Source of the DNA: Paramoeba atlantica | Taxonomy: Eukaryota > Protista > Discosea | Direction: 5' to 3' | DNA: 64,000 bases | Assembly: GCA_977017575.1 (NCBI GenBank) | Contig: CDRNVI010000092.1 | Coordinates: forward strand, 37,643-101,642 | Shown: positions 11,577 through 62,692 of the stretch, one piece after another | How the letters are laid out: each line of letters begins with the position of its first letter | How positions within the stretch are numbered: the stretch's first letter is position 1 | Notes under the pieces: generated by a model | Database searches by the model: none | What the model saw: only the letters and a program-made list of their open reading frames with translations | What the model was told of the DNA's origin: nothing | Program-made: the position numbers and the translations under genes

Positions 11577-13298
11577 ATAGCATCCCGGTCCCATCTTCTA
11601 AATCAGCTTTGGTACCTCGACGACGGGGTGCTAATAGGGGAACCCCAGGAAGTCAGAAAAGCTTTGGACATTCTAGCAGAGGTCGGTCCAAAGTGGGGAC
11701 TTTTTCTAAACCTCTCCAAGTGCGAGATTATCACACCCCCAGCGTCAGCACATACGTCGACTTTATTTCCGGACATACCAAGCGAAAAGATACGGTACGA
11801 CGGCAATTTTGAGATCCTAGGTACCCCAGTTGGCTCGGCAGAACACTGTACGGACTTCCTTAGGACCCATGCCATCGATCCAGCCAGCGAAACCCTAGGG
11901 GCCACAACGCTGATAGAAGATCCCCAAGTCGCCCTCTCCTTAATACGACAATGTGCCGGCTTTTGCCAGATGGTTTACGCTCTAAGGACTACTCCCCCGC
12001 AAGCCCTCGGAGAACTGCCTCAAGAGCTCGACAAACACTTAACAGAGGCTGTCGAAATTGCACTCTTTCCCCTCGATGCTAATGCCAAGGACCAAATACA
12101 AAGACCCAAACGTCACGGGGGATTCGGCCTCCGATCTTCAGCCCTACATCAGTCGGCCGCCTACGTTTCCTCTGTCGCATTCGCCGCAGAAATAGACAAA
12201 TGGGACCCCACGGAAGCCCAAGGATTTGCCGCTGCTGTTCGCGACGTGAATAATAAGGCAGGGGTCGAGCTGGTCGATGAAAAGACGGGACGTATCCTTA
12301 AACCGCCCTCTCTCATACCGGAACGCCAAAACAACAAGCGAAGCCCCAGTTCCCGGCCCACAAAGCGCAAACTCGGCTCATCGCTGGTACCACCACTCCC
12401 CGCAGATGTTTCTGAACCGGAAACAATTGTCCCTCGTCAAAAACATCTGAGTGAAGCAATATCAGAGCAGGAGTTCACGGCAGCATACCGAAAAGCAGAG
12501 GCAAGAACCAGGGCCCGGTGGGTTTCACAATCGGGAAGAGGAGCAGGAAACTGGGCCTTCGTAGTACCCTCAAAGAGCAGAGGTTACGCTTTTACTAAAA
12601 CTGAGTTCAGGACTCTTTCGCGTTGGTGGCTTGGAATGGACGTCTTCCCGGAAGATCGAACATGCCCAGCAGAAGGCTGCACCCTCCCATTGCTAAAGAA
12701 TGGAGAGCACGCCATACTATGTAAAAACGGACACGGTTTGATATCCCGCCACAACGCCCTGGCACATCAGTTCACTTCTTTCTGCAGCAAGGCCTTTCTC
12801 CAACCACAGAGAGAAAAGAGTCTGGGAAACCGAGGCCCAGGTGGCGCTCTCACTAGACCCGCGGACGTTTTTCTTCCTACTGGCTCTCTGGAAAAGGGAG
12901 TTCTGGCGCAAGGAATGGTATTAGATTTTGCAGTCACACATGCGCAGCAAATGAAGTATTTGGACCTAGTCCGTACTGCTAGCTGGGTGACACCAGGATC
13001 TTTTGCCGGACAGTACGCCGAGACGAAGGCGAGGCAGCGACAAGAAGCGGATGATGCGGGACACCTTTTCGAAGCTATGGTCGTCGAATCCTTTGGCTCT
13101 TGGAGCGAAAGCGCGCTCTCGGTTCTCCGTAATATCGGAGCACAACGGGCTAATGCGTCAAAAGAGCTTCTCTCACGGAGCCAAGCGCGAAATGACCTCC
13201 TAACGGAGCTCAACATTGCCCTGATGCGTTCCCAAGCCAGAATGATGGTTTCACGCATCTGCGTGCCGGATCCCACGGAACCTATGGTAGTGACATAG
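11577..13298 (+). CDS. Same CRE1 ORF, 3' part: RT YLDD motif, thumb, CCHC knuckle, restriction-like endonuclease
   Basis: Reads IASRSHLLNQLWYLDDGVLIG, directly continuing EDIA from 1868; CPAEGC...HAILC...HN, RPADV, DFAVTH, ESFG motifs. Confidence 0.9.
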   Translation: MASRSHLLNQLWYLDDGVLIGEPQEVRKALDILAEVGPKWGLFLNLSKCEIITPPASAHTSTLFPDIPSEKIRYDGNFEILGTPVGSAEHCTDFLRTHAIDPASETLGATTLIEDPQVALSLIRQCAGFCQMVYALRTTPPQALGELPQELDKHLTEAVEIALFPLDANAKDQIQRPKRHGGFGLRSSALHQSAAYVSSVAFAAEIDKWDPTEAQGFAAAVRDVNNKAGVELVDEKTGRILKPPSLIPERQNNKRSPSSRPTKRKLGSSLVPPLPADVSEPETIVPRQKHLSEAISEQEFTAAYRKAEARTRARWVSQSGRGAGNWAFVVPSKSRGYAFTKTEFRTLSRWWLGMDVFPEDRTCPAEGCTLPLLKNGEHAILCKNGHGLISRHNALAHQFTSFCSKAFLQPQREKSLGNRGPGGALTRPADVFLPTGSLEKGVLAQGMVLDFAVTHAQQMKYLDLVRTASWVTPGSFAGQYAETKARQRQEADDAGHLFEAMVVESFGSWSESALSVLRNIGAQRANASKELLSRSQARNDLLTELNIALMRSQARMMVSRICVPDPTEPMVVT

Positions 13299-13324: not shown

Positions 13325-13563
13325 GGATGCCGGTCGATGCCGACAGGGTCTACGCTCACGCCTAGTCCGCCAGGTCTAGGTACTCCAAGTGAGGTAGGAC
13401 AAGGGCTGGGAACTTTGTTCCCTCCCCGTCGGCCAGCATCATGCTCCGCGACCGTGCCGCTGTCGGCACAGGCCCATTGCTTGCGCCCTCTCGTACAACA
13501 AGAGAAGGGTTAACAAGGCAAGCTGGGAGAGGTCGAAAGACCCGGTCCGGAACGCGCGAATGG
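13325..13563 (+). ncRNA. Conserved structured 3'-UTR RNA of CRE1 elements, divergent variant A
   Basis: Multiple stems with compensatory changes relative to the other copies; followed by a purine-rich tail and poly(A) at 13800-13828. Confidence 0.75.
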
Positions 13564-13797
13564 TTAGGGGAAAGTCTGCCCCTCCTAGCCGAGGGAGACC
13601 TTACCCTCCCTGGAAAGCTGGTAAGATTGGTAAGGGGAAGTGGGTAAGATGGGAAAGCATGTATTTGCTAGTTATATATTTTGCTCGTTTTCAAAATGGG
13701 GGGAAGTGAGGGAAAGAAGTTGAGCAAGTAGGAAAGTAAGTGAGAAAGTCATACCGTACATACATATATAAAGTTAGAACTCGTACTCTTCCCCCCC

Positions 13798-13831
<34 letters not shown>

Positions 13832-13848: not shown

Positions 13849-14081
13849 GGATGTTGGTTGTGTCGACAGAGTCTATACTCACGCCTAGCCCGCGAGGGCT
13901 AGGTACCCCAAGTGAGGTAGTACACGGGCAGTGAATCTCCTCCCCGTCGGCCAGCATCCTGTTTCGCGACCGTGTCGCTGTCGACACAGGCCCGCGCCTG
14001 CGCCCTCCCGTATAGCAAGGGAAGGGTTCACAAGTCAGGCCGTGGAGAGGTCGAAAGACCCGGTCCGGAACGCGCGGATGG
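13849..14081 (+). ncRNA. Structured 3'-UTR RNA, variant B (5'-truncated insertion with no ORF)
   Basis: GGATG...CCAGCATCC, CCTAGCCC-GCGA-GGGCTAGG and GGTC-GAAA-GACC; poly(A) at 14213-14234. Confidence 0.75.
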
Positions 14082-14232
14082 ATTGGGCGTGGATTGCTTC
14101 CTTTTTTATTATTATTGTTATCAGAATCATAAATAACTTAAGGCAGGTTGAATTACTAGTTTTGGGCTACAACATGTGAAATTGCTAACTTGATTGCTTG
14201 TTTACAAATCATAAAAAAAAAAAAAAAAAAAA

Positions 14233-15354
14233 AAGGCCGGAATATCTTTACTTGACTCGCGAGGCCGTATCCTCACAGCGCCGAACGCCCCTTGCGAAAA
14301 AGCAGTTGGCAGCCCTTTCTCCCATAGAAAGAGGAAACGCCCCCTAGGTGTCATCGATCAGCCTCCCTCGGAGATCTGCCTACCCCTGCGCATAACTTCC
14401 CGCACCATGCATACACCTGAGGAAATACACTTTTCTACACCGCTGTACGCCTCGGAGGATTGTGCTGATACGACCCCCCCGCAATGGTTGAAAGGGAAGA
14501 TCCCTCGCCAGCGAGACATCAGCTACGCGATCGCGGCCCACGATTTCTCCCAATCATACGAAATGTCAGATGTGCGGACACGAGCACGATGGATATCTCA
14601 GTGCGGTAAAGGGGCAAGCAGCTGGGCTTTTGTAACCCCGTCTAAGGACATGGGGTATTCCTTTACCCCTACAGCATTTCGAACCTTGGCCCGTTGGTGG
14701 TTAGGGATCGATGTTTACCCTGAAGAAGGGAAGTGTCCTATGCCGAAATGCCCTCTTCCACTCGACACAAAAGGGGACCACGCATTGTCTTGCAAGCACG
14801 ACAACGGAATTATCGCGAGGCACAATGCCGTGGCAGATCACTTCACGGACCTTTGCAGCAGAGCCAAACTGGCCCCACAACGGGAGAAAAGTCTTGGCAA
14901 CAGAGGCCCAGGGGGGGGCCTCACCAGACCTGGCGACGTATACCTGCGCAGTCTTTTCTTGGGGAATCCCATCGTGCTTGACTTCGCGGTCACCCATGCT
15001 CAGCAACTAAAATATACGGACAAAGTCCGGAACGCTAGCTGGGTAACCGCGGGGTCGTTTGCCGAGCATTATTCCTCCATGGAGAAGGGTAGGCAGCGCC
15101 GGGAAGCCGTTGACGCCGGGTGTGACTTTACGGCCATGGTGGTCGAAAGCTATGGCGCCTGGAGCCCCAGTGCTTCAGCAGTGATCCGCAAAGTTGGGGA
15201 ACGTCTCTCACATGCCTCGTGTGGGTTATTGACAGAGGGGGAAGCCACGAGCAGAATCTTTACGGAGCTGAACGTCACCCTCATGCGCCTTCAGGCGCGC
15301 ATGATGGTTACTCGTTTACTTCCTGAGGATCCGCTCTCTCCTACGGAGGTGTAA
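14233..15354 (+). pseudogene. 5'-truncated CRE1 ORF (thumb end, CCHC, endonuclease)
   Basis: CPMPKC...HALSC...HN, RPGDV, DFAVTH; begins mid-ORF right after poly(A). Confidence 0.85.
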
Positions 15355-15422: not shown

Positions 15423-15655
15423 GGATGCTGGTCGAGTCGACAGAGTCTATACTCACGCCTAGCCCGCGAGGGCTAGGTACCCCAAGTGAGGTAGTACACG
15501 GGTAGTGAATCTCCTCCCCGTCGGCCAGCATCCTGTTTCGTGACCGTGTCGCTGTCGACACAGGCCCGCGCCTGCGCCCTCCCGTATAGCAAGGGAAGGG
15601 TTCACAAGTCAGGCCGTGGAGTGGTCGAAAGACCCGGTCCGGAACGCGCGAATGG
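15423..15655 (+). ncRNA. Structured 3'-UTR RNA, variant B
   Basis: Near-identical to the 13849 copy; lies 69 nt after the ORF stop. Confidence 0.75.
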
Positions 15656-15907
15656 ATTGGGTCTGGATTGCTTGTTTTTATTTTTACTGTGTCTTATTTG
15701 TCGTATATACTTAGGGGAGATTGAATTGCTAGTTTTGGGCTGAGAAAAAAGAAAAAGAAAATATACTTCTGTGGAAATGAAAAGAATTGCTAATTTGATT
15801 GCTTGTTTTAAATTCATATACCCAAAAAAAAAAAAATTCAACTTGGCGAAAAAAATGACAAAAAAAATATTTTTCCAAAATCGTAAAAAAAAAAAAAAAA
15901 AAAAAAA

Positions 15908-16900: not shown

Positions 16901-16932
16901 AACGATAAAGATACAGTTTCTGTACCTTGTTG
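16901..16932 (+). other. Spliced-leader-exon-like 32-mer
   Basis: AACGATAAAGATACAGTTTCTGTACCTTGTTG contains the euglenozoan SL core CAGTTTCTGTAC; not followed by a GT donor. Confidence 0.8.
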
Positions 16933-16974
16933 AATTATTTTCTTTTTTCCTTTCCCCTTTTTGGTTCAACTAGT

Positions 16975-19900
16975 ATGTCCTGCCGCGAACGTCCATGTAC
17001 ACACTCCTCAGAAAATGAAGCGTCCTTCGCAAGAATGGTGAACACAGACGACGTTACATTGAACGAGGCGGAGAAATCACACCTTCTTGGTAGTTGGAAT
17101 CAATTTGAGGGCAACAGACATCTCATCTCAGCTCCCAGTACCTATGACGAAAGTCTGTACACAACGGAAATCCCGAGGAATATCCCTGCAGAATGGCTAC
17201 GCCTCGCTGAAAAAAAATCAGACGACCGCGAAACACCGGACACGGGACACCACCTAGCCGAGAATGAGGAAATACAACACTGCGCAGTACAACGAAAGGG
17301 TACGACAGCCAACCTTGCAGCTAGTATTTCTACTCTGAAATCAGGGCCAGCAATCAACGCTGCACTGAAGGATGCAATATCACGTCAACAGCGCAATGCG
17401 GATGGGATCAAAGGAGTTTCAAAGACGGATAACCGATCACCTAGGCGACCCTTGGAAACACGAAGGCAACACCAACAGACTATTAAGGACAGCACCCTCG
17501 GCGAACAAACGCCGACACGCTCTCAGCCAGCCCACCAGATCCAATCACCTCCAAAGCATTCCTCCGGCACAAAACCCATGACTAGCGAAACTGGTTGTTC
17601 CGAAGCACAATCGGACGGTAGGCGCGAAGACTTTGGCAACAGATATGCCCCACGAAACGGAAGCGACAAGCCCCCGCCACTTCCGCAGAGCGCTCCCAAA
17701 CACCGCATCTGTCCTGCTGAAGGATGCGCCTGGCGCACGATTGCACATGGAGGGTCTTGGCAAGCATATTATAACCACGTAGCGTACCACCACAGTACCG
17801 GCGTCCCGGCTGCATGGTGGGCAGCGGAAGGCAAGTTCCTTTGTGAAACGTGCGGCAAACACTACACGCTCAACCGTAAAACTACGCACCCGAAGACCTG
17901 CATCGGTCAATCAAGTCAAGCAGCACAAATGTCAGTAGATATTTTTTCGCAGCACTCCATCGTAACAGAAACCGCCGAATTACCTACTTTGGCAAGTGTC
18001 TGCACACTCGCGAAGAGCACATGTAAAGACGTGCCCCACCGATGCCGTCAGCTGTGGGCGGAGATCTTAACTAGCGCTTTGAAGGCAGCAGTACAAGAAA
18101 ACTCAGTAGCGACATGGACACTCCTTGCCATGCTCCCAAAGTGTGTGTTACCGGCCCCTCGACGCGGAGGGCGTAAAGGCTACATGGCGTACTCATCCCA
18201 CGTTCGAAAGTGCATGGAGCGATGGATGGCAAAGGACTACACTCAGTTGTGGAAAGAGGCAGCCGCTAATAGACGACAACGAAACCCTGACCCCATTTCG
18301 GAACAACATGAGGCCCAGAAAGCCGTCATCCGCGCAGAACTTCTAGTCAGACAAGGTGAATTCTCTAGAGGTATGGCTGCCTTAACCGCAGCGCCGATGG
18401 CAGATGAAAACGAAGAAACATATGCGAAGCTGTTGGAGAAGCATCCGGCACGTCAAACTACTACGGAAGCCCTCGCCGACCTTCCACCACACGTCAAACA
18501 TTTGAACCTCGAAGAATCCGATATTAAAGTAGCCATAAACAGTTTTCGTCGAGGATCTTCAGCAGGTACGATGGGTCTCCGCCCGGAACACTTACAATCC
18601 GCGCTTCTTTCCTACGAAGACAAGAATGTTCACCCGCTTCAGGAACTCACAAACCTAGCTAATCATCTTCTTTCTGGCAAAGCACCCATCGAAGTACAAG
18701 CATATTTCGCAGGTGCGCGACTATGTGCGCTCAAGAAGGGGGAAAACGACGTTCGCCCTATCGCAGCGGGGGAGACTATTCGTCGGTTAGTGAGCAAGGC
18801 CGCATGCAGTAGTGTCCGAATGAAAGCGGGGAAATACTTTGAAGCACAACAATATGGAGTGGCCACCCGAGCAGGGGCAGAACGTATCATTCACCTTTGT
18901 AGGCTTGCAATGGACACTGACACAACAAATTCCGATATAGTTTTATGCAAAGTTGATTTGTCCAACGCATTTAACAACGTTAGCCGTGACGCATTCATCA
19001 GTCTCACCAGAGAGCACTTCCCGGAATTGTCCAGATGGGTAGAATGGTGCTACGTCGAAACCAGTAGCTTAACTTACGGGCACCGTTTCGTACCGTCCGC
19101 GGAAGGGGTACAACAGGGCGATCCCCTCGGTCCTCTTCTCTTTTCCTTAGTCATGTTGGAGGTTACCAAACAAATTCAGTCGTACACGGAACTTCTTCTA
19201 AACCTGTGGTACTTAGACGATGGAGTTTTTATAGGGAAAGCAGAAGAAGTAAGAAAAGCCCTCGACATACTTGATCACCTCGGACCAGGTCAGGGACTAC
19301 ACCTCAATAGCAAGAAATGCGAGATCATCACACTACCCTCATCTGCACACCAAACATCTCTTTTCCCAGATATACCAAAAGACAAGCAAAACACAGAAGG
19401 AAATTTCGACATCCTAGGAAGCCCTATCGGATCCCACAAACACTGCGCCGAATACCTCATGACCAATGCGATCGAACCAGCAGAAGATACTTTAGTTGCT
19501 TCCAGTTTAATTGAGGACCCGCAGGTCGCCATGGCACTGATACGACAATGTGCTGGCTTTTGTCAACTGGTCTACGCCCTACGTACAACACCCCCACAAT
19601 GCATACAACGCGTTTGCGAACATCTAGACAATTCACTGTTGAGCACAGCTGAGGAAATACTTTGCCCACTGAACGCCCCTGCCCGCGCTCAGATCCAACG
19701 CCTGAAGAGACACGGAGGTTTCGGTCTGCGTTCATCGGAAATGTACTCGTCTTCAGCTTACGTAGCATCTGTGGTGTTCGCAGCAAGCAAGGACGGATGG
19801 AATCCACTGGACGCGGAAGGTTTTTCACCTGCCGTCAACGACGTGAACGCAAAAGCCGGAGGCACTCTCGTAGATCCCGAAACGGGTCGTTTCCTTTGCC

Positions 19901-20939
19901 CCACCACCCAACAGCGCGACCGATCACATCCCTCTTTTCCCCCAAAGCCACCCATTCACTCTTCCACACAGGTCGATACAGCCCGCGAGCCATCAGACAC
20001 CGGACCTTTTTTAGATGCTGACCCGCCGTTGGGCGCTGACCTTGACATAGATATTGACCCGCCAGAATGGGACGAAAGTATCATCCCACGTCAGAAAGAT
20101 ATCATCCGCGCTATAGGGGAAAGGGAGTTTAATATAGCATACTGTTCCGCTGATACACGAACGCGAACCAGATGGGTATCACAATCAGGGAAAGGGGCTA
20201 GCAGTTGGGCATTCGTCACCCCATCGAAGGACCTGGGCTATGCATTCAAACCCGCGGAGTTTCGAACCTTGTGTCGATGGTGGTTGGGGGTGGATGTATA
20301 CGGAGAAACTCGTCCATGTCCCTCGGATGAATGCAAACTCCCTCTGGGTCCTGAAGGGGATCACGCACTCGTGTGCAAACATGGACAAGGTATAATAAAC
20401 CGGCACAATTCCCTGGTTGAACATTTTTCCTCCTTCTGCGGGCATGCCTCTTTGGCACCCCAACGAGAGCACAGTCTTGGCAATCGAGGTCCCGGAGGGG
20501 GGCTCACCAGGCCAGGCGATGTGTTTCTCCCCACGTATTCCAAGGCTAAAGGCATGGTCCTTGATTTTGCAGTTACCCACGCTCAGCAAACTAAATACAC
20601 GGACAAAGTTCGTAACGCTAGCTGGGTAGCTGCAGGATCATTCGCCGAGCACTACGCCGCGGAAAAAAGGTGCACCAACGGTTGGAGGCTGAGGAAGCAG
20701 GCCATGAATTCACAGCCATGGTGGTAGAGAGCTATGGCTCCTGGAGCGTGAGCGCAACGTCCGTTCTAAAGGGAGTCGGAAAGAGGCGGGCACAGGCCTC
20801 AAATGGGACCCTTACGGAAGAGCAGGCTACAAATAAATTGTATGCCGAATTGAATGTGACCCTCATGCGAGCACAAGCTCGTATGATGGTTACACGCATG
20901 GCTGTGCCCGACCCGAACGAGCCCATCACGGAAGGATAG
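16975..20939 (+). CDS. Near-intact full-length CRE1 ORF with one frameshift near 20665 (A6 run)
   Basis: ATG after a polypyrimidine tract and AG; zinc fingers, QQGDPLGP, WYLDD, CCHC, RPGDV; ORF 20670-20939 supplies the ESYG...C-terminus. Confidence 0.9.
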
Positions 20940-20979
20940 TGTCGGACCCAACGGATCCTATGGTGGTGACATAGGCCAC

Positions 20980-21212
20980 GGGTGCTGGTCGGGTCGACAG
21001 AGTCTATGCTCACGCCTAGCCCGCGAGGGCTAGGTACCCCAAGTGAGGTAGTACACGGGTAGTGAATCTCCTCCCCGTCGGCCAGCATCCTGTTTCGCGA
21101 CCGTGTCGCTGTCGACACAGGCCCGCGCCTGCGCCCTCCCATATAGCAAGGGAAGGGTTCACAAGTCAGGCCGTGGAGTGGTCGAAAGACCCGGTCCGGA
21201 ACGCGCGAATGG
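20980..21212 (+). ncRNA. Structured 3'-UTR RNA, variant B
   Basis: Same motif; tail ends in poly(A) at 21344-21370. Confidence 0.75.
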
Positions 21213-21343
21213 ATTGGGTCTGTATTGCTTGTTTTAGTTTTTACTGTTTCTTGTTTGTAGTATATACTTAGGGGAGATTAAATTGCTAGTTTTGGGCTGA
21301 GAAAAAACAAAAGGTACATCTGTGGAAACAAAAACAAAAAAAC

Positions 21344-25036: not shown

Positions 25037-25620
25037 AGAAATCAACGGACCCTTTCTTCTGCCATAAACTTCGTAAAATAAGGTAAACAAAGAAATCAAT
25101 ATTTCCCATGTATAAATAGAAGATTTATCCCGCTATACCCATTTCCTTTTCTATGTCAGGGCATCCGGCTTATGTCGGATGATGGGACTTAGCGATCCCA
25201 GCTTCCCGAGCTAACTCACCCGGCGTCGCATAACAAGACGCTAAAGAACTAGGGTGAATACGATGAATACAATATGGATGACACTACCCGGTGCCAGTAA
25301 AACGAGGCACTAAATAATTAGGGTGGATGTCATTCTGGCAACGTAGAATGGGTGGCACCGCCCGGTACCGAATATAACAAGGTACTAAGAAACTAGGGTG
25401 GGTGCCATTCGGGCTAATCTTTGGAATGTGTTTGTGTTTTTTTTATCCACCCTCAAAAGATAGAGTGGTTTTTTTTTTTTTGGTCAAGGGGCGCCTTTTT
25501 TTTTTTTGCTCAACTTTTTTTTTATGCAGGTGCAACAGAATACGGTGCCGAATTTTACCGGGCGACGCTTTGCCTATTACAAAATAAAGTCTCCTAAATT
25601 TCTTATCGTAAACTTATATA
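25037..25620 (-). mobile_element. Putative non-autonomous YR2-related element containing three bulged hairpins
   Basis: Starts with TAAGTTTACGATAAGAAATTTAGGAGACTTTATTTTGT, as in the YR2 left end at 34816-34853; shares ATACCCATTTCCTTT with 30444; ends GATTTCT. Confidence 0.45.
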
Positions 25621-25732
25621 CTTTTTTTTTTTTTACTTTCTCAAGTTTACATAAACTTTTAGTACTGATTTTTGTCTATCTCTTCGCAGACTTTATAATT
25701 CCAATTTGTATCTTTTCTGTACTTTTGATTTC

Positions 25733-28700
25733 TTAAAGAATAGTGCTTTTCTGATAGTCTTGAGGCTCCAAAAAATGTCGGAGCTGTGCGTATACTTCGG
25801 ATCCGTTCAGCTCTTGGAGTAGCAACTTGAATGCCTGTTCGGTTTTTTGGGTATCCAACAGGCAGACATCCGTCAGTGACTTAATCAGGCCCCGTGTGCT
25901 CTTATGTAAAGACCCGCAGGACAAGACAGGAAGGCACTCAAAAGCTTCCGCCGGAATCATGCCACTATTGACATATGTTTCATTTTTCCGCTGTATAGCT
26001 TCTCGCACGAGTTGGGAACACTTTTTATTCCGATGGGAAGGCGCGAGCTCGTGCACCACAGTTAGGTCGTAGAACACCACGCCACTGTTCCAGTAGATCG
26101 CAAGATCCGGGCCTGAGCGATGAAACTGCCGTCCTCCGCATGTTTTGTGGTGGAGATGCTGATTGTTGTAGTCGACTGTATTTCCGCATGTTAGACAACT
26201 CCACGTGCTAAAAGAACGCGGCTCTCTTTCGCATGGAATACCAGCTTTCATGCAAAGATCATACAGAAACTTGGTCAACATGTTGTGCTTCGCTGTGGCG
26301 TTGAAACCTGTACATTGCACGCATCCGGGGATGTGAGTTAGTGCAGTGTTTGCATCCATCAATGTTCGGCATCCAGGGCAAGTCATAGCATCAGGAAGTC
26401 TCGGGTGATGTACTCCAAGACGGGGCATGACTGCTAGCTCGAATAAGTGCGGTGGTACATATCTTACATTGGACAGTAGCCAGTCATAACTCCCCTTATT
26501 GGAGGTTGCTTTTAACGTCCCGGCCATTTGTGGATCGCTTACGAGTTTGTTCCATGCTTCCTCATGAAGTTTCGCTGCAGCGGTAATTTCGTCAGTAGGT
26601 GGTTTTTGACGAGCGAGTTCTTGTTCATTTGCTGTCCCAGCGTGTTCAGTGCTATGAAACTGTGACGGCACAACTCGAGCTGAAAAAGATTTTATATGCT
26701 CAAAAGCTGCGTGTCGGGAAGCTTCATAAGCTGCCGCGCGCGTTGGGTGACACGCCGTGAGACCAAGTCCTCCTTTCTTCAGGGGTAACCTTGCTATGTC
26801 AATTTGTCTAGTCTGCAATGGGCCCATCCATGTTTGAAGTACGTTCTCGATTTCGCTATCAAAACGTTTACATGTTTGATCCGTGGCCTTGGGGTTGTGT
26901 GTCCTCATGTAGTACTGTTGACGAACGTTCACACTTTTTGTCAAAAGGATGAGGGATACGTTACTCATGCCCATTAGCTTTAGCCTGCGGAATATTACTT
27001 CTTGTTTGCCGATCTTTTGGAGCAATTTTTGACTGATGGCGTCGTCTTCTCCAATAAAAGCCCCCAGTACTTTAGTGGCCTGGCTCTCGGTTTGTACTCC
27101 TTCGGCTTGAAGAGCTTCTGGAATGGACTTGCCGAGGATGCCACCAAACCAAACACATTTATGCGCCGATAGTGCAAGATTGCTAGATGCGACAAGTGCC
27201 TTCAGCCTTTTAAAAGCGTTCGTGAGCTGATTCGGATCTTCGGATGTCAAATTGATATCGTCGATGTACGCATGTATGTTGATGCCAGGAAATTCTTCTG
27301 CAAGGGTTTCCAATACAGGTTGTAGGTATGTGCAGAAATACAGCGTGGATAGTGGCGATCCCTGTTTTACTCCTGAGGAACTTGATACTGTGTCGACCAA
27401 TTTACCTTCGCTCCCGTAGAAGAGAAGCTGAGATTGCTCGGAATATTCAGCCGCAAAATACCTTTGGAAGGGTCGGAGCGTTGCGATACCGAAAACATGC
27501 TTTGCGACGTCATTCCTGGAGGGGGTGTTGAACGCATTTTTCAAGTCTACGGATAGGATGGAGTGGCCTGTCAAATATTTTTCGTGAAGGGTGTGTACTA
27601 TCCTCTCGCAGCCCGCTTTTGACATTATCCCCTGCTGCATTGGCGCAAAAAGTGGCTCCAGGGTATTTTCATAGCGTTGAAAAAGAATGATTCCCGCTAA
27701 CTTTCCAAAAACGTCTCCCATGGCAACTGGCCGAACGCCTCCATCTGGTTTCGGGATAGCGATCAACCTCGCTCTGTTTAGCCGCCGTAAAACTTGTCGC
27801 GAAAGAAAACCGTTCAGTAGATCGGCCATCATGTGACAAAGGCTCGTGCAGCACACTTCATCGTCCAGCAGAAGTCGTAGCACGTTGTCAGTCGTTCCCG
27901 TTGGGCCTGGGCTGACTCCCTTCGCTAGCCTTCGACCTGCTGCACGCAGCTCCTCTGGAGAGACCCCGGCGATGATTGGCGCGTCATCTGGCAGTTTGAA
28001 GTCACATGTTTGTGCAGGGTGAAGCATTCGCAATTTTTCCAGCGTTTCGGCGTCGGACAGCATGTTGCGGGTGAAGGTCTGACCCATGACCTTGGCCGCT
28101 TTAGTGGAGCACCCCTCAAGCACGAGTCTTGTCGCTTTCTTTACTGCTCGCACGTCATCGGCAGTTGTCTTTGCCTCTTCTGATGAGCCGTCCTGCGGGC
28201 TCGTGTGCCCCTTGTGTGGTTTCCGCCGTCGTTGTCGTCCGCTAGAGCTTCGAATTGTTGCCAGAGAGACTTTCATAGCTGAAAGTGTTTGATTCCAGAT
28301 TTTGTGGCGCCCAGCGTAGTCGCTTTTTTCATAGGCGAACATAATATCCCGGTACACCGCAACTACGCACGGCACAAACTCAGGGGAGAAGCTGCGCGCC
28401 GTTGGCACTGGTAGGTGGTCTACGTCTTCGTCAGGAGCTGTTTGTTGGGTGCTTCCCACCGGCGGTGTGTATTCAAGCACTTCCGGTGTCGTAAAATCTA
28501 TCGGAGGAGGGGCGCAGTGCCACAGAATTTGAAAGACACGAACGTTTTCTTGTGGTGGGATACATCCATCAAAATTCTCTCCTGCCTTATGTCCAACGAC
28601 TCCTGTATATTGAATAGTAAGTTTACCTTTGGATGCCCGTTTGTACGTTTTTACCACTTTTCCTAGCGAAATGTTGAGTGTCGTTTGTCGGTCCCACGTC

Positions 28701-38985: not shown

Positions 38986-39099
38986 GTTTTTTTTTTTTTT
39001 TTTTTTTTTTCTCAGCCCAAAACTAGCAATTCAATCTCCCCTAAGTATATACGACAAATAAGACACAGTAAAAATTAAAACAAGCAATCCAGACCCAAT

Positions 39100-39332
39100 C
39101 CATTCGCGCGTTCCGGACCGGGTCTTTCGACCACTCCACGGCCTGACTTGTGAACCCTTCCCTTGCTATACGGGAGGGCGCAGGCGCGGGCCTGTGTCGA
39201 CAACGACACGGTCACGAAACAGGATGCTGGCCGACGGGGAGGAGATTCACTACCCGTGTACTACCTCACTTGGGGTACCTAGCCCTGACGGACTAGGCGT
39301 GAGCATAGACTCTGTCGACCCGACCAGCATCC
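39100..39332 (-). ncRNA. Structured 3'-UTR RNA, variant B
   Basis: Reverse complement of the motif; its tail ends at the poly(T) at about 38987-39010. Confidence 0.75.
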
Positions 39333-39344
39333 GTACCGGGAGTT

Positions 39345-39545
39345 TCCCACGAAAGTCACCTGGCCATACAAGACGATCTCTGCTAATTTTAGAAAAATCT
39401 CCCCAAGAGCAACCGGGCGCACGTCCCTTCCATTTGCTTTCGGTATGGCGACTAACCTTGCCCTCTTCAACCTGTCCATCACGTCTTTCGAGATCGCTCC
39501 ATTTACAACATCCAGTAACATGTGACACAGAGCTGTGCAACAGAT
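39345..39545 (-). pseudogene. Short CRE2 RT fragment
   Basis: RLKRARLVAIPKANGRDVRPVALGEIFLKLAE. Confidence 0.8.
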
Positions 39546-39569
39546 TTGATTTTTTTATTCACATGTTAC

Positions 39570-39860
39570 TCAAAAAAGCAAAACAGTAATAGCCGAATGC
39601 TGAAAGCAGCGAAAAAGTGACGACTCAAAGCAGCGAAACGGTGATAACCCAAAGCAGCGAAACAGTAACAACCAAGCGCTGAAAGCTGCGGAACAATAAT
39701 CACCAAGCAGCAAAACAAAAATAACCAAAGGCTGAAACCTAACCAAGCAGCGAAACAGTAATCACCAAAGGCTGAAAGCAACGAAACATTATTAATCACC
39801 AAAGGCTGAAAGCAACGAAACATTATTAACGAAATGTTAAAAGCAGCGAAAATGTAATAT
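39570..39860. repeat. Degenerate tandem repeat downstream of a CRE3 stop codon
   Basis: Recurrent AAGCAGCGAAA, AAGGCTGAAAG and AATCACC units. Confidence 0.8.
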
Positions 39861-39872
39861 TCAGAGGAGTGT

Positions 39873-42800
39873 TTAAAGACGGAGTCCTCCTACCCATTTC
39901 TCGGTTTCTATATATTGGCGCAATTGAGAGACGACTGCATAGGCTGAATATTTTTCCAGTTCAAGTTGAAAAGCTTCTCGTACAATCTTGTAATCAACAT
40001 CATTTCTTTTCGCCAATGTTTTCAGCAAAACCTTTGTCTCTTCATGTAGTACTCCACAATCTGTCACAGCTATGCAGCGAAAGCATTCTGGATCAAGACC
40101 TTTTTCTTTGACATATTTTGCTATCTTCCGCTCTTCCGCACTCTGCAGCAGGGCATTGCTGCTCTGCTTTGCATAGCTGCTGCAGCACGTATGTACCACG
40201 GTAACGTCGTATAAAATTTCTCCAACATCTGGCCACATAATCGCTAGGTCTGGGCCAGATCTAATTCGACGCGCTCGGCAAGGATGGTATTCCGCCGCTT
40301 CTGGGGAAATTGAGCACTTGCATTTGGTGCAAAAAAAGGACGCATGAATACGAGGTTCGATCGCACATGGAAGACCAGCTTTGGAACACATTTCGGCAAT
40401 ATAGCGTACCAAATGAGAATGTTTTCTCGTGCAATTCATGCCAGCACATCGTGAACATCCCGCTACGTGAGGAATGATTTTGCTTGATGTTTCGATTGTT
40501 CCACATCCAGGGCATGTAATCTCGCCTGACACATTACTTAGAGCAATTCCTAGGCGCATCATTAGAGTGTAACGAAAAAGATATGGATTTACGTAGTTGC
40601 ACGTTGAATCTAAGTGATTGTTCGCCTCCTTCGTTCGCTTTATGATATTTTGGAATCTCGGTATTGCATTCAATTCTGCTGCTGTCTTCTCGTGTTCATT
40701 CTTCATGCTCTTTCTTAGCTGGGTGCGTGCAGCTTGTGAATTCGTTCGTGTGCTGTCGGCTTGTTTCTTGCCTCCCTTATCTACCGGAGCATTAATGGGT
40801 TTCGATCGCTCATCAATAGATTTTAGGGACGCTTCGAAAAAGTAGCGTTGCTTTAGAACGGTTGAGGTGATTCCTAGACCTCCCATTTTACATGGGAGGG
40901 CAGAGAGTTTAAGTGCTTCACTATCTGCACCACACCATTTCTTTAAGATCTCATGGATTTCCTCGTCGAACACCTGGGCAAGAAGAAACGAAGCTCCAGG
41001 TTTGTGGACTCGAAGGTGGTAATCATGACGGGGTATGGTACATCGCTTGAGAATCGCTAGTGACAAGTTGCTGGGACCCATAGCGCGAAGTCTTCGAAAT
41101 AAACATTTATGTTTCCCTAACTTCTCCAAGAGCTTTCGTTCAACGGCTTTATTATGCCCGATGTATGCTCCTAGGACCTTGATGGAATCCACACAGTCTT
41201 CCACCCCAAGTTCCTTGAGATCCATCCCTCGATTATTCGTTGAACTGTTGCCTTGGAATACTTCGCATTTACGGGAATTAATTTCAAGATTCAGACCACT
41301 TGCTAGTTCTTTGAGGTGAAGGAACGCAACTTCCAAAGACGACTCATTTTTGGAGCTCATCGTCACATCGTCCTGGTAGGCTCTGATAGTAACCTCTGGA
41401 TAGAGCTTCGCAATTTCTTTCAAAGGACCTTGTAGCAGTGCGCAAAAATAAACCGAAGAGAGTGCTGATCCTTGACGGACCCCAGACGAGCTTTCGATCA
41501 CGGAATGTAATGAGTCGTTGGCGAAAAATAAAAGTTCCGATGGTTGACCATATTCAAAATAGAACATTCGCATAAAGTGTTTGAATACCGGGTATTGAAG
41601 GAGCGCTTCTTCTATTGCCGTACGTTGTGGCGTATTGTATGCATTCTTGAAGTCAATCGTCAAAATTGTGGCTCCAGCTTCATGCTCTTCCAAAAGTTCA
41701 TGTACAATGGACTCACATGCATTCTTTTGTAATATGCCTCTTTGGATCGGTTGGAATATGTCTGACAAGGAGTTCGCATGGCGCTCAAGGAGGATACAAC
41801 CGCAAATTTTTAGCAGCGTTTCCCCCATTGCAACCGGTCGTATTCCATTGTTCGGTTTTGCAAGGGCTATCATTCTGCATCGTGTTTATCTTACTCGGAC
41901 ACTTTTCGCAACTTCCCCATTTATGACGTCTCTCAGCATGTGGCAGAGTGAAAGGCAGGATTCTTCGTCCTCCACTAAAATTCGCATCATGCTTTCACTC
42001 AGACCTGTCGGGCCAGGAGCTGCACCTTTTGACAATTTTTCAGTCGCTAGACGAAGTTCAGAAGGTTCCAATATCGCAATTCGCGGGAAGTCTCGATCAG
42101 AAGTTTGAGGTGTAGGGCCTTTGGGGTGTAGATCTCGAAGTTTGTCAACCTTTTCCCAGAGTGGAAGAGCAGAGTCCTTGTAAACATTGTCGAGTATGCG
42201 GGTAGCTTTTCCAAGATTTCCTGCCTTTGCTGCTTGCAATGCATTTCGAATTGATCGTTTGTCTACTTCTTGTACAAGTCGTTCTTCCTCGGTAATGTTC
42301 GTATCGATAGTTTCCCACTCACGTCTCCCTCGACGCTGTACGGAGCTCTGGCGCCGTAGGTAGTTTAGACGGATTGTGGCCAAAGAGTCCCGTGGTGTAT
42401 CGAGGAGTTTGTGCCAGATAACAGTTCTTTCTGCTTCTGTCTGAGCCTTCGGGTACGCTTTAATAATGGAACGAAAAATCGCGATTACATGGGCGGCAAA
42501 CGTTGGATCAATTTGTGCCATCTTTGGCAGCGGTTCCAAATCAGATGTTCCCTCAATGCCTCGCTCCTCCTTGTTCTCTGAATTTCCAGTGTTTTCCATT
42601 GACACATCGACGCTTTTTACTGTATTTAGACACAGTGCCTTAATGGACCAAATTTTCACTTTTGCAGATGGAGGAAGGTAGATAAAACCAGAGGGTCCAT
42701 TGTCTCCGTCGCTTGGCTTGTATTCCACCTTCAGCTTTACAATACCTTTTCGGACAGTCCTCTTCACCACTACTCCTTTTGAGGCATATTTCTGCTCTTT

Positions 42801-48374: not shown

Positions 48375-48697
48375 GTCGACAACATAAATATTGAATCCGA
48401 TGATGCCGTGGAAGAATTTTCCTTTGAGACCGACACTAAAGAAGAAGAAGGCGAACCAAGTGAAGAAGAGATTGCTGTAATAGAGCGAATACGAATTATT
48501 ATTATTTTTTTTTTTTTTTTTTTTCACGACTTCTTTCTTTCCTTTCACTTCCTTTCCCTCCCTTTCTTTACCTCCCTTTGCTTTTCCTTTTCGTTCCTTT
48601 CCTTTACTTCCCTTCGCTTTCCTCACTCGACTTCCAAACTCATTGGGGAGGTTGAGGACTCCCTGCGCTTTTGCTAGGAGTCGGCCCAGGGAAAACC

Positions 48698-48881
48698 TTC
48701 CTTACGTGTTCTGGACCGGGTCTTTTGGCCTCTCCCAGCTTGCCTTGGTAACCCTGCTCTTGTTGTACGAGAGGGCGCAAGCAATGGGCCTCCGCCGGCA
48801 GCGGAACAGTCACAGAACCAGGTGGTGGCCGACGAGGAGGGGCAGGGCCCCCTCCCCGGGCACTACCTCACTTGGGGTACC
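48698..48881 (-). ncRNA. Structured 3'-UTR RNA, divergent variant C (5'-truncated)
   Basis: GGTACCCCAAGTGAGGTAG...CCCTCTCGTACAACAAGAGCAGGG...CGGTCCAGAAC; purine-rich tail at 48525-48640. Confidence 0.7.
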
Positions 48882-49112: not shown

Positions 49113-49240
49113 TTCCTTACGTGTTCTGGACCGGGTCTTTCGACCTCTCCCAGCTTGCTTTGGTAACCCTGCTCTTGTTGTACGAGAGGGCGCAAGCAAT
49201 GGGCCTCCGCCGGCAGCGGAACAGTCACAGAACCAGGTGG
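49113..49240 (-). ncRNA. Second, shorter copy of variant C
   Basis: 48941-49240 duplicates 48525-48827 with a few substitutions. Confidence 0.65.
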
Positions 49241-49496
49241 TTTTTTTTTTTTTTTTTTTTTTTTAGAAATAATTTTTGCAATTAATAGGGGGGGAGAAGT
49301 ATGAATCGCGGCATTGCCTCTATATTTTGACCCATTAGACGAACCAAGTAGGTCCATTGGGGGGGGTATATGATTTTAAAACAAGCAATCAAATTAGTAA
49401 TTTCATATTTTGGAGCTCAAAACTAGCAATTCGACCTCCCGTAAGTATAAGAACAATAAAAACAATAACAATAAAAACAAGCAATCTATGCCCAAT

Positions 49497-49712
49497 CCAT
49501 TCGCGCGTTCCGGACCGGGTCTTTCGACCTCTCCACGTCCTGACTTGTGAACCCTTCCCTTGTTATACAGGAGGGCGCAGGCGCGGGCCTGTGTCGACAG
49601 CGACACGGTCGCGAAACAGGATGCTAGCCGACGGGGAGGAGATTCACTGCCCGTGTACTACCTCACTTGGGGTACCTAGCCCTCGCGAGCTAGGCGTGAG
49701 TATAGACTCTGT
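49497..49712 (-). ncRNA. Structured 3'-UTR RNA, variant B (lacks the 5' P1 strand)
   Basis: Motif present from ACAGAGTCTATAC onward. Confidence 0.7.
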
Positions 49713-49876
49713 ATAGAAATAATTTTTTTTTTGATTTTTTTTTTTTGGCTCGTTCCTTCTCGTTTTTCCTTCCCCCCTTCTCTCGCTTCTTTGAGAGAAA
49801 ACTACAACCGCACATCTCTAACTATATATTAAAAAACGAGTGTAAGAAATCCATTCTAAAGAAATTAAAGCTAAAT

Positions 49877-56861: not shown

Positions 56862-57094
56862 GGATGCTGGTCGAGTCGACAGAGTCTATGCTCACGCCTA
56901 GTCCGTCAGGGCTAGGTACCCCAAGTGAGGTAGTACACGGGTAGTGAATCTCCTCCCCGTCGGCCAGCATCCTGTTTCGCGACCGTGTCGCTGTCGACAC
57001 AGGCCCGCGCCTGCGCCCTCCCGTATAACAAGGGAAGGGTCCACAAGTCAGGCCGTGGAGAGGTCGAAAGACCCGGTCCGGAACGCGCGAATGG
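56862..57094 (+). ncRNA. Structured 3'-UTR RNA on an extremely 5'-truncated CRE1 copy
   Basis: Preceded by the last ~15 codons (RIVVSDPNAPLEGA*); purine-rich tail; poly(A) at 57276-57300. Confidence 0.75.
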
Positions 57095-57304
57095 TTGAGG
57101 AGCCGCCTGCAGGCCGGGTGAGGCGAAGCTGAGGGAGACTTTACCCCCCCTGAAAAGTTGAAAAGTTGGGTAGGGGAAAGCAGGAAAGTAGGGAGAAAGG
57201 TGGGAAAAGTATGTCAAGAGGTGAGAAAGAGGAGAAAGAGAGAGAAAAATTTTCTTTATTTGCATAAAAACAATAATAAAAAAAAAAAAAAAAAAAAAAA
57301 GGGT

Positions 57305-57603: not shown

Positions 57604-57677
57604 GCCCCTACCCACTGTGTCTTACCCACCTATTCTCAAGCCTTGCTCTCATGAGTGAGGTTCTCTAATGTGATCCC

Positions 57678-57910
57678 GGATGCTGGTCGGGTCGACAGAG
57701 TCTATACTCACGCCTAGCCCGCGAGGGCTAGGTACCCCAAGTGAGGTAGTACACGGGCAGTGAATCTCCTCCCCGTCGGCCAGCATCCTGTTTCGTGACC
57801 GTGTCGCTGTCTACACAGGCCCGCGCCTGCGCCCTCCCATATAACAAGGGAAGGGTTCACAAGTCAGGCCGTGGAGAGGTCGAAAGACCCGGTCCGGAAC
57901 GCGCGAATGG
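57678..57910 (+). ncRNA. Structured 3'-UTR RNA, variant B
   Basis: Same motif. Confidence 0.75.
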
Positions 57911-58183
57911 ATTGGGCATGGATTGCTTGTTTTAATTTTTACTGTTTTTCTTGTTTGTAGTATATACTTAGGGGAGACTAAATTGCTAGTTTTGGGCTGA
58001 GAAAAAAGGTACATCTGTGGACAGAAAAAGAATTGCTAATTTGATTGTTTGTTTTCAATTCGTATACCCCCCCCCAATGGACCTACTTGGTTCGTCTACT
58101 GGGTCAAAATATAGAAGCAATGCCGCGATTCATACTTCTTCCAAAGATACAGTAAAACGGTAAAGATACAAAAAAAATAAAAT

Positions 58184-61100: not shown

Positions 61101-62692
61101 ACTGAGTGACATGGCTCGACGACAAGCACAAAGAAATAAACAGTTCGGCGGTCTCGGCCTTCGCTCAGCGGAAATGCATGCCACCTCAGCGTACGTAGCT
61201 TCAGTAGCTTTCGATTCCGACAAGGATCGATGGGATGCAAATGAGGCTGAGGGCTTTTCTTACGCCGTGGAGGACATTAACCGGCGTGTAGGGGGGTGTA
61301 TGGTGGACAAATCTACCGGGAAAATCCACAAGGACTCCGTCATAAAGAGATGCCCCTTCTCGCCCTCCCCCGATATTGACCTTTCTCAAGATTTGGCGAT
61401 TCCTCGACAACGCGATCTCAGTCATGCGATTTCAGCGAGAGACTTTGAGGAAGATTACGCAAGAGCGGATCCCCGCACTCGGGCTAGGTGGCTCTCACAA
61501 ACGGGCGACGGGGCATCCAACTGGGCCTTCACGGTTCCCTCAACTCTCTGCGGTCATGCCTACACCCCTACTGAATTTCGGACTCTGATTCGTTGGTGGC
61601 TCGGGGAGAGTATATACCCTCAAGGTCACAACTGCCCGATTCCGAATTGTCGCCTCCCACTCGGCCCTGGGGGGGACCATGCGCTAGCCTGCAAGTGCGG
61701 CCACGGAATCATTACAAGGCACAACGCCCTAGCGGAACAGTTCTCCGCTGAATGCAGCAAGGCCGGGTTGAGCCCACAGAGAGAAGTCTCTCTGGGAAAC
61801 AGGGGTCCGGGCGGCGCCCTCACGCGACCCGCAGATGTCTATGTCCGGAACGGTGGTCTCGGTCAGGCCCTCGTCCTTGATTTCGCTGTCACACATGTTC
61901 AGCAACAAAAGTATACGGACCTGGTCCGTGATGCTAACATGGTGGCAGCCGGGTCATTCGCCGAGAGGTACGCCGTCGAACACAAGCGGAAGCAACGGGA
62001 GGAAGCTGAAGAAGCGAAGACCAAGTTCACAGCTATGGCTGTCGAAACATACGGATGCTGGAGTCCGGCCGCTATGTCGGTCTTGCGGGAAGTCTCGAAA
62101 GGCCAAGCTGCGACCTCAGGTGGAATACTTTCGCAAGAAGGGGCGTTACAGCAAATACTAACAAGTATGAACGTCACCCTCATGCGCTCCCAGGCGCGTA
62201 TGCTCGTTCTTCGCCTCCCCTCGGCGAACACAGGCCCTGCACTTGTGGGGTATGGCAAAGAAGAGTAAGGAAAACTTCTGGCCTGGATGTTGGTCGAGTC
62301 GACAGAGTCTATGCTCACGCCTAGCCCGCGAGGGCTAGGTACCCCAAGTGAGGTAGTACACGGGAAGTGAATCTCCTCCCCGTCGACCAGCATCCTGTTT
62401 CGCGACCGTGTCGCTGTCGACACAGGCCCGCGCCTGCGCCCTCCCATATAGCAAGGGAAGGGTTCACAAGTCAGGCCGTGGAGAGGTCGAAAGACCAGGT
62501 CCGGAACGCGCGAATGGATTGGGCGTGGATTGCTTGTTTTTATTATTATTGTTATTATTGTTATTATACTTACGGGAGATCGAATTGCTAGTTTTGGGCT
62601 CCAAAATATGAAATTGCTAATTTTATTGCTTAAAAAGAAAAAAAAAAAAAAAAAATCTTTAACGATAAAGATACAGTTTCTGTACCTTGTTG
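58184..62692 (+). mobile_element. Full-length CRE1 element (ORF 58252-62268 with one in-frame TAA at 59926) flanked by identical 32-nt SL-like direct repeats
   Basis: SL 32-mers at 58184-58215 and 62661-62692; zinc fingers, QQGDPLGP, WYLDD, CCHC, RPADV; 3' RNA at 62285-62517; poly(A) at 62638-62655. Confidence 0.9.
62285..62517 (+). ncRNA. Structured 3'-UTR RNA, variant B
   Basis: Its P1 has the pair TGGTCGA/TCGACCA. Confidence 0.75.

Follow-up and report, generated by a model that had tools for sequence, protein, structure and literature searches.

A block of about 235 nt recurs in the 3' untranslated regions (UTRs) of retrotransposons within the 64-kb stretch of DNA analysed here (the window). 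The locus raises two questions: whether this block, the module in what follows, is an RNA structure maintained by selection, and what it might do for the elements that carry it. An 18-nt core, GGTCGAAAGACCCGGTCC, was used as a query against the window with up to three mismatches tolerated. It matched at 11 places, for a chance expectation of 0.01. Alignments assign the copies to three variants, A, B and C; eight copies are full length and three are truncated at their 5' ends (Table 1). The initial annotation had already counted 11 copies of three kinds. All 11 are real, and the core falls on exactly these places.

Table 1. Positions of the module, its parts and associated features. Positions are those of the window unless a locus is named; CM, covariance model.
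Feature	Position	Strand	Evidence	Setting or remark
Module, variant A, full length	13325..13563	+	CM match, 227 bits	begins 27 nt past stop of ORF 11628-13298
Module, variant B, full length	13849..14083	+	CM match	inside 5'-truncated element starting just past previous poly(A)
Module, variant B, full length	15423..15657	+	CM match	68 nt past stop of ORF 14407-15354
Module, variant B, full length	20980..21214	+	CM match; depth step	252 nt past stop of 1266-aa RT ORF 16927-20727
Module, variant B, full length	39098..39332	-	CM match	~540 nt past stop of ORF 39873-41873
Module, variant C, 5'-truncated	48698..48881	-	CM match; alignment	begins in domain-1 bulge, directly 3' of poly(A) run
Module, variant C, 5'-truncated	49113..49240	-	CM match; alignment	begins at P1 end, directly 3' of poly(A) run
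Module, variant B, 5'-truncated	49495..49712	-	CM match; alignment	begins inside S1, after poly(A)-rich run
Module, variant B, full length	56862..57096	+	CM match	carries second, unrelated tail class
Module, variant B, full length	57678..57912	+	CM match	
Module, variant B, full length	62285..62519	+	CM match	17 nt past stop of RT ORF 60034-62268; poly(A) of the element, then spliced-leader sequence at ~62660-62690
Domain-1 P2'/P2a motif remnant, degenerate	57635..57674	+	motif model R2, 27.5 bits, E 1.4e-4	directly upstream of B module at 57678
Domain 1, A copy	13325..13441	+	mapped coordinates	
P1, A copy	13325-13337 / 13429-13441	+		
S1, A copy	13339-13346	+		5' pseudoknot strand
P2/P2', A copy	13348-13359 / 13389-13400	+		
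Hairpin P2a, A copy	13360-13381	+		
Conserved 3' bulge ACUCCAA, A copy	13382-13388	+		
Variable hairpin P3, A copy	13402-13428	+		
Domain 2, A copy	13443..13553	+	mapped coordinates	
P4, A copy	13443-13453 / 13544-13553	+		
S2, A copy	13454-13459	+		
S3, A copy	13460-13469	+		partner S2 (hairpin) or S1 (pseudoknot)
P5-P6-P7, A copy	13473-13527	+		bulge UAACAA at 13511-13516
GAAA hairpin P8, A copy	13531-13542	+		
Variable tail and poly(A) of A-bearing element	13566..13828	+	sequence	
Extra tail hairpin	13590-13612; 57125-57150	+	sequence	
Extra tail hairpin	~48640-48665	-	sequence	
Leader-started elements	16914, 58197, 62674	+		
Leader-started element	34886	-		
Leader-started elements	L007:2190-2230; L031:1480-1520			
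Variant F	L067:13222			18 nt past RT ORF
Variant D1	L010, L055, L007			three copies
Variant D2	L070:7679			3' UTR of another RT family, after A-rich tract
Variant D3 and full-length C			genome-wide pattern matches	

Elements that carry the module

The ORFs upstream of the module carry the Pfam domain RVT_1. When the reverse transcriptase (RT) domain only was compared with proteins of solved structure, the best relatives were R2 proteins (E 1.5e-7); the C-terminal 275 amino acids gave no sequence match to solved structures. The C-terminus of the 1266-aa ORF contains a CCHC motif followed by RPGD..LDFAV, a PD..D-type arrangement that was read by eye as a restriction-like endonuclease. A protein search returned nine relatives, all from one ENA sample and with no named CRE relative among them, and the Atlas look-alike search returned generic RT clusters only. 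The label CRE1, which the initial annotation had given to these elements, thus goes beyond the RVT_1 assignment and the weak R2 matches. On the comparisons available the elements may be called CRE-like at most, with an R2-type RT and an association with the spliced leader.

Elements carry at their 5' ends a kinetoplastid-type spliced leader (ending CAGTTTCTGTACYTTGTTG), which immediately follows the poly(A) of the element before. About 37 nt of leader (..CTTTAACGATAAAGATACAGTTTCTGTACYTTGTTG) opens these elements and is followed by the 5' UTR, with no GT splice donor; the succession of poly(A) and leader produces head-to-tail nests of elements. Since the spliced leader occupies the 5' end, trans-splicing appears to generate the 5' ends of the elements. 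The placement of the leader suggests that copies derive from trans-spliced mRNA, or that elements insert into the leaders of older copies, or both. Poly(A) tails adjoin the 3' part of the spliced leader, and many other insertions adjoin poly(A) or A-rich tracts. At three loci, the poly(A) of B-type elements is fused to an A-rich tract of the form (CAAAGACAAGAAAAAAAG)n, an arrangement suggesting that A-rich or poly(A) DNA served as the insertion site. A-rich repeats of the same unit lie upstream of the module in copies of variant D (L055:1990-2085 and L070:7560-7625; see below). The set of mobile elements reported for Bodo saltans resembles that of this genome (PMC4728078).

The module was initially said to follow every CRE1 ORF whose 3' end survives. 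This proved too broad, as the elements ending at 49877 and 25733, both on the minus strand, differ. Their RT-encoding families have other 3' ends in place of the module (49728-49877 and 25216-25733, minus strand), one of them a short G/A-rich tail. ORF 39873-41873 is of a different C-terminal type, and its clade is otherwise without the module in the window; the spacer between this ORF and its B module is filled with tandem repeats of about 30 nt (TTTCGCTGCTTTCAGCCTTTGGTGATTA-like; 39400-39800, minus strand). ARAGORN reported a 'tRNA-Stop (tta)' at 12641-12728 (minus strand), antisense inside ORF 11628-13298, which is probably a false positive.

A cassette exchanged between lineages

Between elements, the module is 93-100% identical in the window alignments, whereas the 100 nt immediately upstream are only 10-60% identical. 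Further upstream, the ends of the ORFs are 35-66% identical over 300 nt, and the tails downstream sort into unrelated classes despite the near-identity of the modules that precede them. The observation that had first drawn attention to the module, its conservation far above that of the adjoining spacer, therefore holds. Genome-wide, the core has 491 exact matches in 45.7 Mb, compared with none for the reversed control, and a covariance model derived from the window copies gives scores above 279 bits to no fewer than 150 full-length copies. In contigs of the DNA runs, the word depth of the module is approximately 60-270 times that of the adjacent ORF. For the copy at 20980..21214 the edges of this step are sharp, at about 20955-20991 on one side and 21214-21250 on the other. 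None of the runs recorded as RNA was found to contain the stretch.

The relationships among ORFs do not match those among the modules. Of two ORFs with C-termini 91% identical, one is followed by a B module and the other by an F module; B is common to two ORFs whose C-termini are 54% identical, and the nearest relative (67%) of a D-bearing ORF is B-bearing. Just upstream, some B modules have older, degenerate remnants of the domain-1 motif (L065:6790-6915; window 57635-57674). One module (L069:3219) is a chimera, in which domain 1 is of type B and domain 2 of type A. From this mismatch between ORFs and modules, taken together with the identity contrast, the remnants, the chimeras and the sharp edges, it is concluded that the module is a sharply bounded cassette exchanged between retrotransposon lineages.

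Module-bearing sequences also occur as tandem arrays. Each unit carries a module at C21:592-9952 and C22:144612-153968, where the period is about 2283; further module-bearing arrays were found at C16:20122-22545 and C83:389947-392424 (period about 1100-1120), at C1:11225-36843 (about 5093) and at L024. The L024 units, of about 1.1 kb, are identical 5'-truncated element ends with poly(A) between them, and they look like amplified units rather than independent insertions.

Fold, covariation and a pseudoknot between domains

The module comprises two domains. Domain 1 is a three-way junction in which P1 closes S1, a stacked P2-P2'-P2a arm and a hairpin of free sequence, P3; the arm has a bulge of 7-8 nt on its 3' side only. 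In domain 2, P4 closes the P5-P6-P7 arm and the GAAA-capped P8. When variants A, B, F, D1 and D2 were folded singly, the same domain-1 junction was obtained each time as the minimum-energy fold. The helices that had been named by eye, along with the changes described for A and C, are each present in the alignments; in that list G124 had been counted twice, in P4 and in the hairpin.

The near-identity of B copies, clearly exchanged between lineages, invites the explanation that no RNA structure has been selected at all, the block being conserved by recent recombination or gene conversion and its helices being incidental. Related sequences, moreover, may beat shuffled controls without any structure. 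Evidence bearing on this point comes chiefly from diverged variants, which were collected from 64 loci and six contigs of the same genome and supplemented with short pattern counts genome-wide. D and B differ at roughly half of their positions and in G+C content (45% in D, 62% in B). With the window's three variants alone, the covariation obtained from RNAalifold is thin (6 double-changed pairs, covariation term +0.22). The main counts were made on a model-fitted alignment. On 40 distinct rows, 96.4% of the cells are paired (33-43% with slid partners) and 28 pairs are double-changed (3-6 with slid partners). Over all counts, which cover 2723-2769 cells, 96.4-97.0% of the cells are paired, compared with 31-43% when partners are slid by 1-3 columns, and 28-30 pairs are double-changed, compared with 2-8 in the slid controls, the rows representing about seven variant lineages of one organism and hence few independent events behind the covariation. 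None of 500 shuffles equalled the observed number of paired cells, the number of double-changed pairs or the covariation score, a test in which kinship alone can let sequences beat shuffles without structure. Given eight diverse copies aligned simply with MAFFT, RNAalifold found P1, P2a, P3, the hairpin and P5-P7 again; double changes occurred in 21 of its 58 pairs.

The changes also distinguish the two strands. On the sense strand 96.4% of the cells are paired, including 229 G-U cells, compared with 89.1% for the antisense equivalent, and most one-sided changes are transitions by which a sense-strand pair becomes G-U, in agreement with the bias noted at the outset. The retention of helices through double changes in D, where about half of the bases differ from B, the collapse of pairing in the slid controls, the bias of single changes toward sense-strand G-U and the success of a blind prediction (see below) largely refute the explanation by recombination without structure, which is hardly credible any longer. 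The module is a structured, covarying, sense-strand RNA of two domains, as had been proposed, with the diverged variants now providing the double changes.

Variant D retains the P5-P6-P7 arm and the GAAA-containing hairpin of domain 2. No convincing candidate for the closing helix P4 was found in this variant, RNAalifold pairing AACC with GGUU of P8. In both domains an outer helix is combined with an inner helix GCC/ACC...GGU and with a 3' bulge that follows the pattern U-A/U-C/A-C/A-C-A-A, a resemblance of architecture only. Duplication of one motif as the origin of the two domains has no statistical support: a domain-1 model matched domain 2 only in C (E 2.6 and 7.7), not in B. A scan of metagenome contigs with the domain-1 motif pattern gave no matches.

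The partner of S1 (GUCGACAG in B) is S3 (CUGUCGAC), the strand that constitutes the loop and the 3' arm of the S2/S3 hairpin. The resulting pseudoknot helix, of 8 bp, is 98.9% paired in the model-fitted alignment, with three pairs double-changed. Within the D family, S1 position 8 and S3 position 1 form A-U in 34 copies, G-C in 17, A.C in one and G.U in none; that is, the pair is Watson-Crick in 51 of 52 copies. Both C copies in the window, which are 5'-truncated, are without S1. The C-type S3 (CUGCCGGC) led to the blind prediction of a G at S1 position 5, which was borne out by GUCGGCAG in each of the nine full-length C copies of the genome (9/9). The S3 nucleotides involved in the D and C compensations would be unpaired loop bases if the hairpin formed. 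The inter-domain pseudoknot, put forward in the initial annotation, is thus well supported.

Other changes concern both partners of S3. An A/G difference in S3 (A and F) is matched by U/C at both S1 position 2 and S2 position 4, and a C/U difference (D2) is matched by G/A at both S1 position 4 and S2 position 6. The inner pairs of the hairpin covary via S2, which changes from U to C in A and F and from G to A in D. In C and D its three outermost pairs are broken, with no compensating change, and overall the hairpin is 92.3% paired, with a shortfall that comes partly from misaligned D. In B, the pseudoknot duplex has a computed stability of -11.7 kcal/mol and the hairpin one of -6.2 kcal/mol. 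The local S2/S3 hairpin is probably real but weaker than the pseudoknot. That the two would compete, as suggested originally, agrees with S3 being common to both and with the covariation of both pairings.

Switching between the two pairings is possible. It might take the form of a two-state RNA switch, in which S3 would engage either S2 in the hairpin or S1 in a pseudoknot that docks the domains, toggling the transcript, for example, between mRNA and RT template. Compensating changes in both pairings and stabilities of the same order speak in favor of such a device, whereas the uncompensated breaks in the outer hairpin pairs of C and D speak against it, and the hairpin may be a mere folding intermediate. 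A switch appears doubtful on this evidence; it would be compatible with the recognition role considered below.

Position in the 3' UTR and possible roles

In the window copies, the module is followed by a variable tail of 87-234 nt and then by poly(A); in the A-bearing element, a 29-nt poly(A) begins 234 nt past the covariance model match (13325-13565). The original placement in the 3' end of the element is therefore right as regards the 3' UTR and wrong as regards the very 3' end. Copies are continuous from ORF through module and tail to poly(A), and the 5'-truncated ones retain the 3' part. Truncated copies of this kind, with tail and poly(A), are the hallmark of target-primed reverse transcription in which the template was not cleaved.

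No match to the module or to any other part of the window was obtained with Rfam 15 covariance models at the gathering threshold, and searches of variants A/B, D and F at E values up to 10 gave chance-level fragments only, in line with the initial view that no known RNA family is represented. ARAGORN made no tRNA-like call in any of the modules, and a literal sequence search of the literature returned no description of the module RNA. These results bear on the hypothesis that the module processes the element transcript as a self-cleaving ribozyme, either HDV-like or belonging to a new class. A compact pseudoknotted fold with conserved unpaired nucleotides would suit a ribozyme, and HDV-like ribozymes are known from R2 and L1Tc elements (PMC4035085). 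Furthermore, one D copy (L007:2150-2190) is polyadenylated directly past the S2/S3 hairpin, the rest of domain 2 being absent; this single case could reflect either processing at this point or the use of an alternative poly(A) site. However, no ribozyme family, HDV included, scores at E up to 10 in A/B, D or F. Genomic copies, being unbroken from ORF to poly(A), point to uncleaved templates, and element 5' ends carry the spliced leader that appears to mark them as products of trans-splicing. Taken together, these observations render a ribozyme role very unlikely.

In R2 elements, recruitment of the reverse transcriptase by a structured 3' UTR is established. In the zebra finch element R2Tg, a pseudoknotted 3' UTR element is needed for target-primed reverse transcription to begin; R2 3' UTR RNA is bound by the protein of the element, and the minimal R2Tg element measures 67 nt (PMC12222951). 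The R2 3' UTR being the closest known system, and R2Tg needing a pseudoknotted element, the most favored interpretation is that the module serves as the recognition element in target-primed reverse transcription, by analogy with the R2 3' UTR. A probability of roughly 0.55 is assigned to this interpretation. The protein encoded by the element would bind the module fold and thereby select its own RNA as a template, and this selection would serve target-primed reverse transcription in the way that R2 proteins act with their own 3' UTR. The starting point of cDNA synthesis would be the poly(A) and tail, downstream of the module.

Like the elements of R2Bm and R2Tg, the module occupies the 3' UTR of a non-LTR retrotransposon and is structured on the sense strand. 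It lies 17-252 nt past the stops of RVT_1 ORFs, in elements that encode an RT and an R2-like protein, apparently with the restriction-like endonuclease that R2 also has; its conserved structure includes a pseudoknot kept by covariation, and a pseudoknot is likewise present in R2Tg. It has no sequence similarity, or similarity at the level of Rfam, to the R2 3' UTR, and it is larger, with about 225-235 nt in two domains compared with the 67-nt minimal R2Tg element. The module also includes a competing hairpin and stands 87-234 nt upstream of the poly(A), whereas the R2 element is next to the 3' end. With tail and poly(A) intervening, the module is neither at the priming 3' end nor leads directly into it, and this position counts against a recognition role, as does the existence of other RT families in the same window that do without the module. 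In addition, a module that passes freely between RT lineages could just as well have a function directed at the host.

In such a function, the module would act through a host protein and not through the reverse transcriptase, serving the element mRNA in the host (stability, export or translation) in the manner typical of kinetoplastid 3' UTR control. A location upstream of a long variable tail, away from the 3' end, would be natural for such a signal, and a common host partner would explain why one cassette is used across divergent RT lineages. A precedent exists in Leishmania, where SIDER2 is a retroposon-derived structured 3' UTR signal controlling mRNA decay (PMC5509151). SIDER2 shares with the module its retroposon derivation, its structured character and the setting of a kinetoplastid 3' UTR, but it is a degenerate ingi-type 79-nt signature that triggers mRNA decay from the UTRs of host genes, and it is unrelated to the module in sequence and fold. 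A fold so large and complex, with a conserved pseudoknot, is less readily expected of a host mRNA signal; every copy examined is associated with a retroelement, and the R2 analogy suits the type of enzyme encoded. A role in host mRNA control is accordingly considered rather unlikely, and recognition by the element's own protein is preferred.

Stringent-type LINEs, such as UnaL2 of the eel, have a conserved 3' stem-loop that functions as a recognition tag and can be shared with SINEs. This sharing between elements parallels the cassette exchange described above, but the LINE tails are single short stem-loops near the 3' repeat, whereas the module is multi-helix and pseudoknotted. The HDV-like ribozymes of R2 and of L1Tc/ingi elements (Pr77 hallmark) resemble the module in being pseudoknotted and retrotransposon-borne, including in kinetoplastids (PMC4035085). 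They differ from it in that they occupy the 5' end and cleave, whereas the module is in the 3' UTR, with no HDV match and no sign of cleavage in the copies. A survey of trypanosomatid mobile elements leaves UTR structure unmentioned (PMC12278014), and no report was found in the literature of a recruiting 3' UTR structure in CRE-like, spliced-leader-associated kinetoplastid elements.

The module provides a defined RNA of about 235 nt, with natural variants, chimeras and a testable alternative between pseudoknot and hairpin, and it opens the question of template choice in an early-branching retrotransposon of the restriction-like-endonuclease type. If it is a recognition element, the mismatch between ORFs and modules would mean that 3' recognition modules are swapped between lineages, which bears on the origin of non-autonomous elements. 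Exchange of the module likewise bears on R2-like systems for RNA-templated DNA insertion. It seems conceivable, as a tentative proposal, that the RNA is a bistable device, perhaps set by the element's protein, in which S3 would alternate between hairpin and pseudoknot and so choose between translation and reverse transcription, and that the cassette would act as a portable mobilisation tag stolen between lineages.

Two further observations concern the tail. A tertiary pairing between a CCCCAA bulge and a UUGGG sequence in the tail was considered and dropped, as the complement varies across tail classes. A small extra hairpin (GAGGGAG..CCCUCCCU, or CAGGGAG..CUCCCC in the C form) is found about 30-60 nt past the module and is common to the second tail class and to the tails of A and C.
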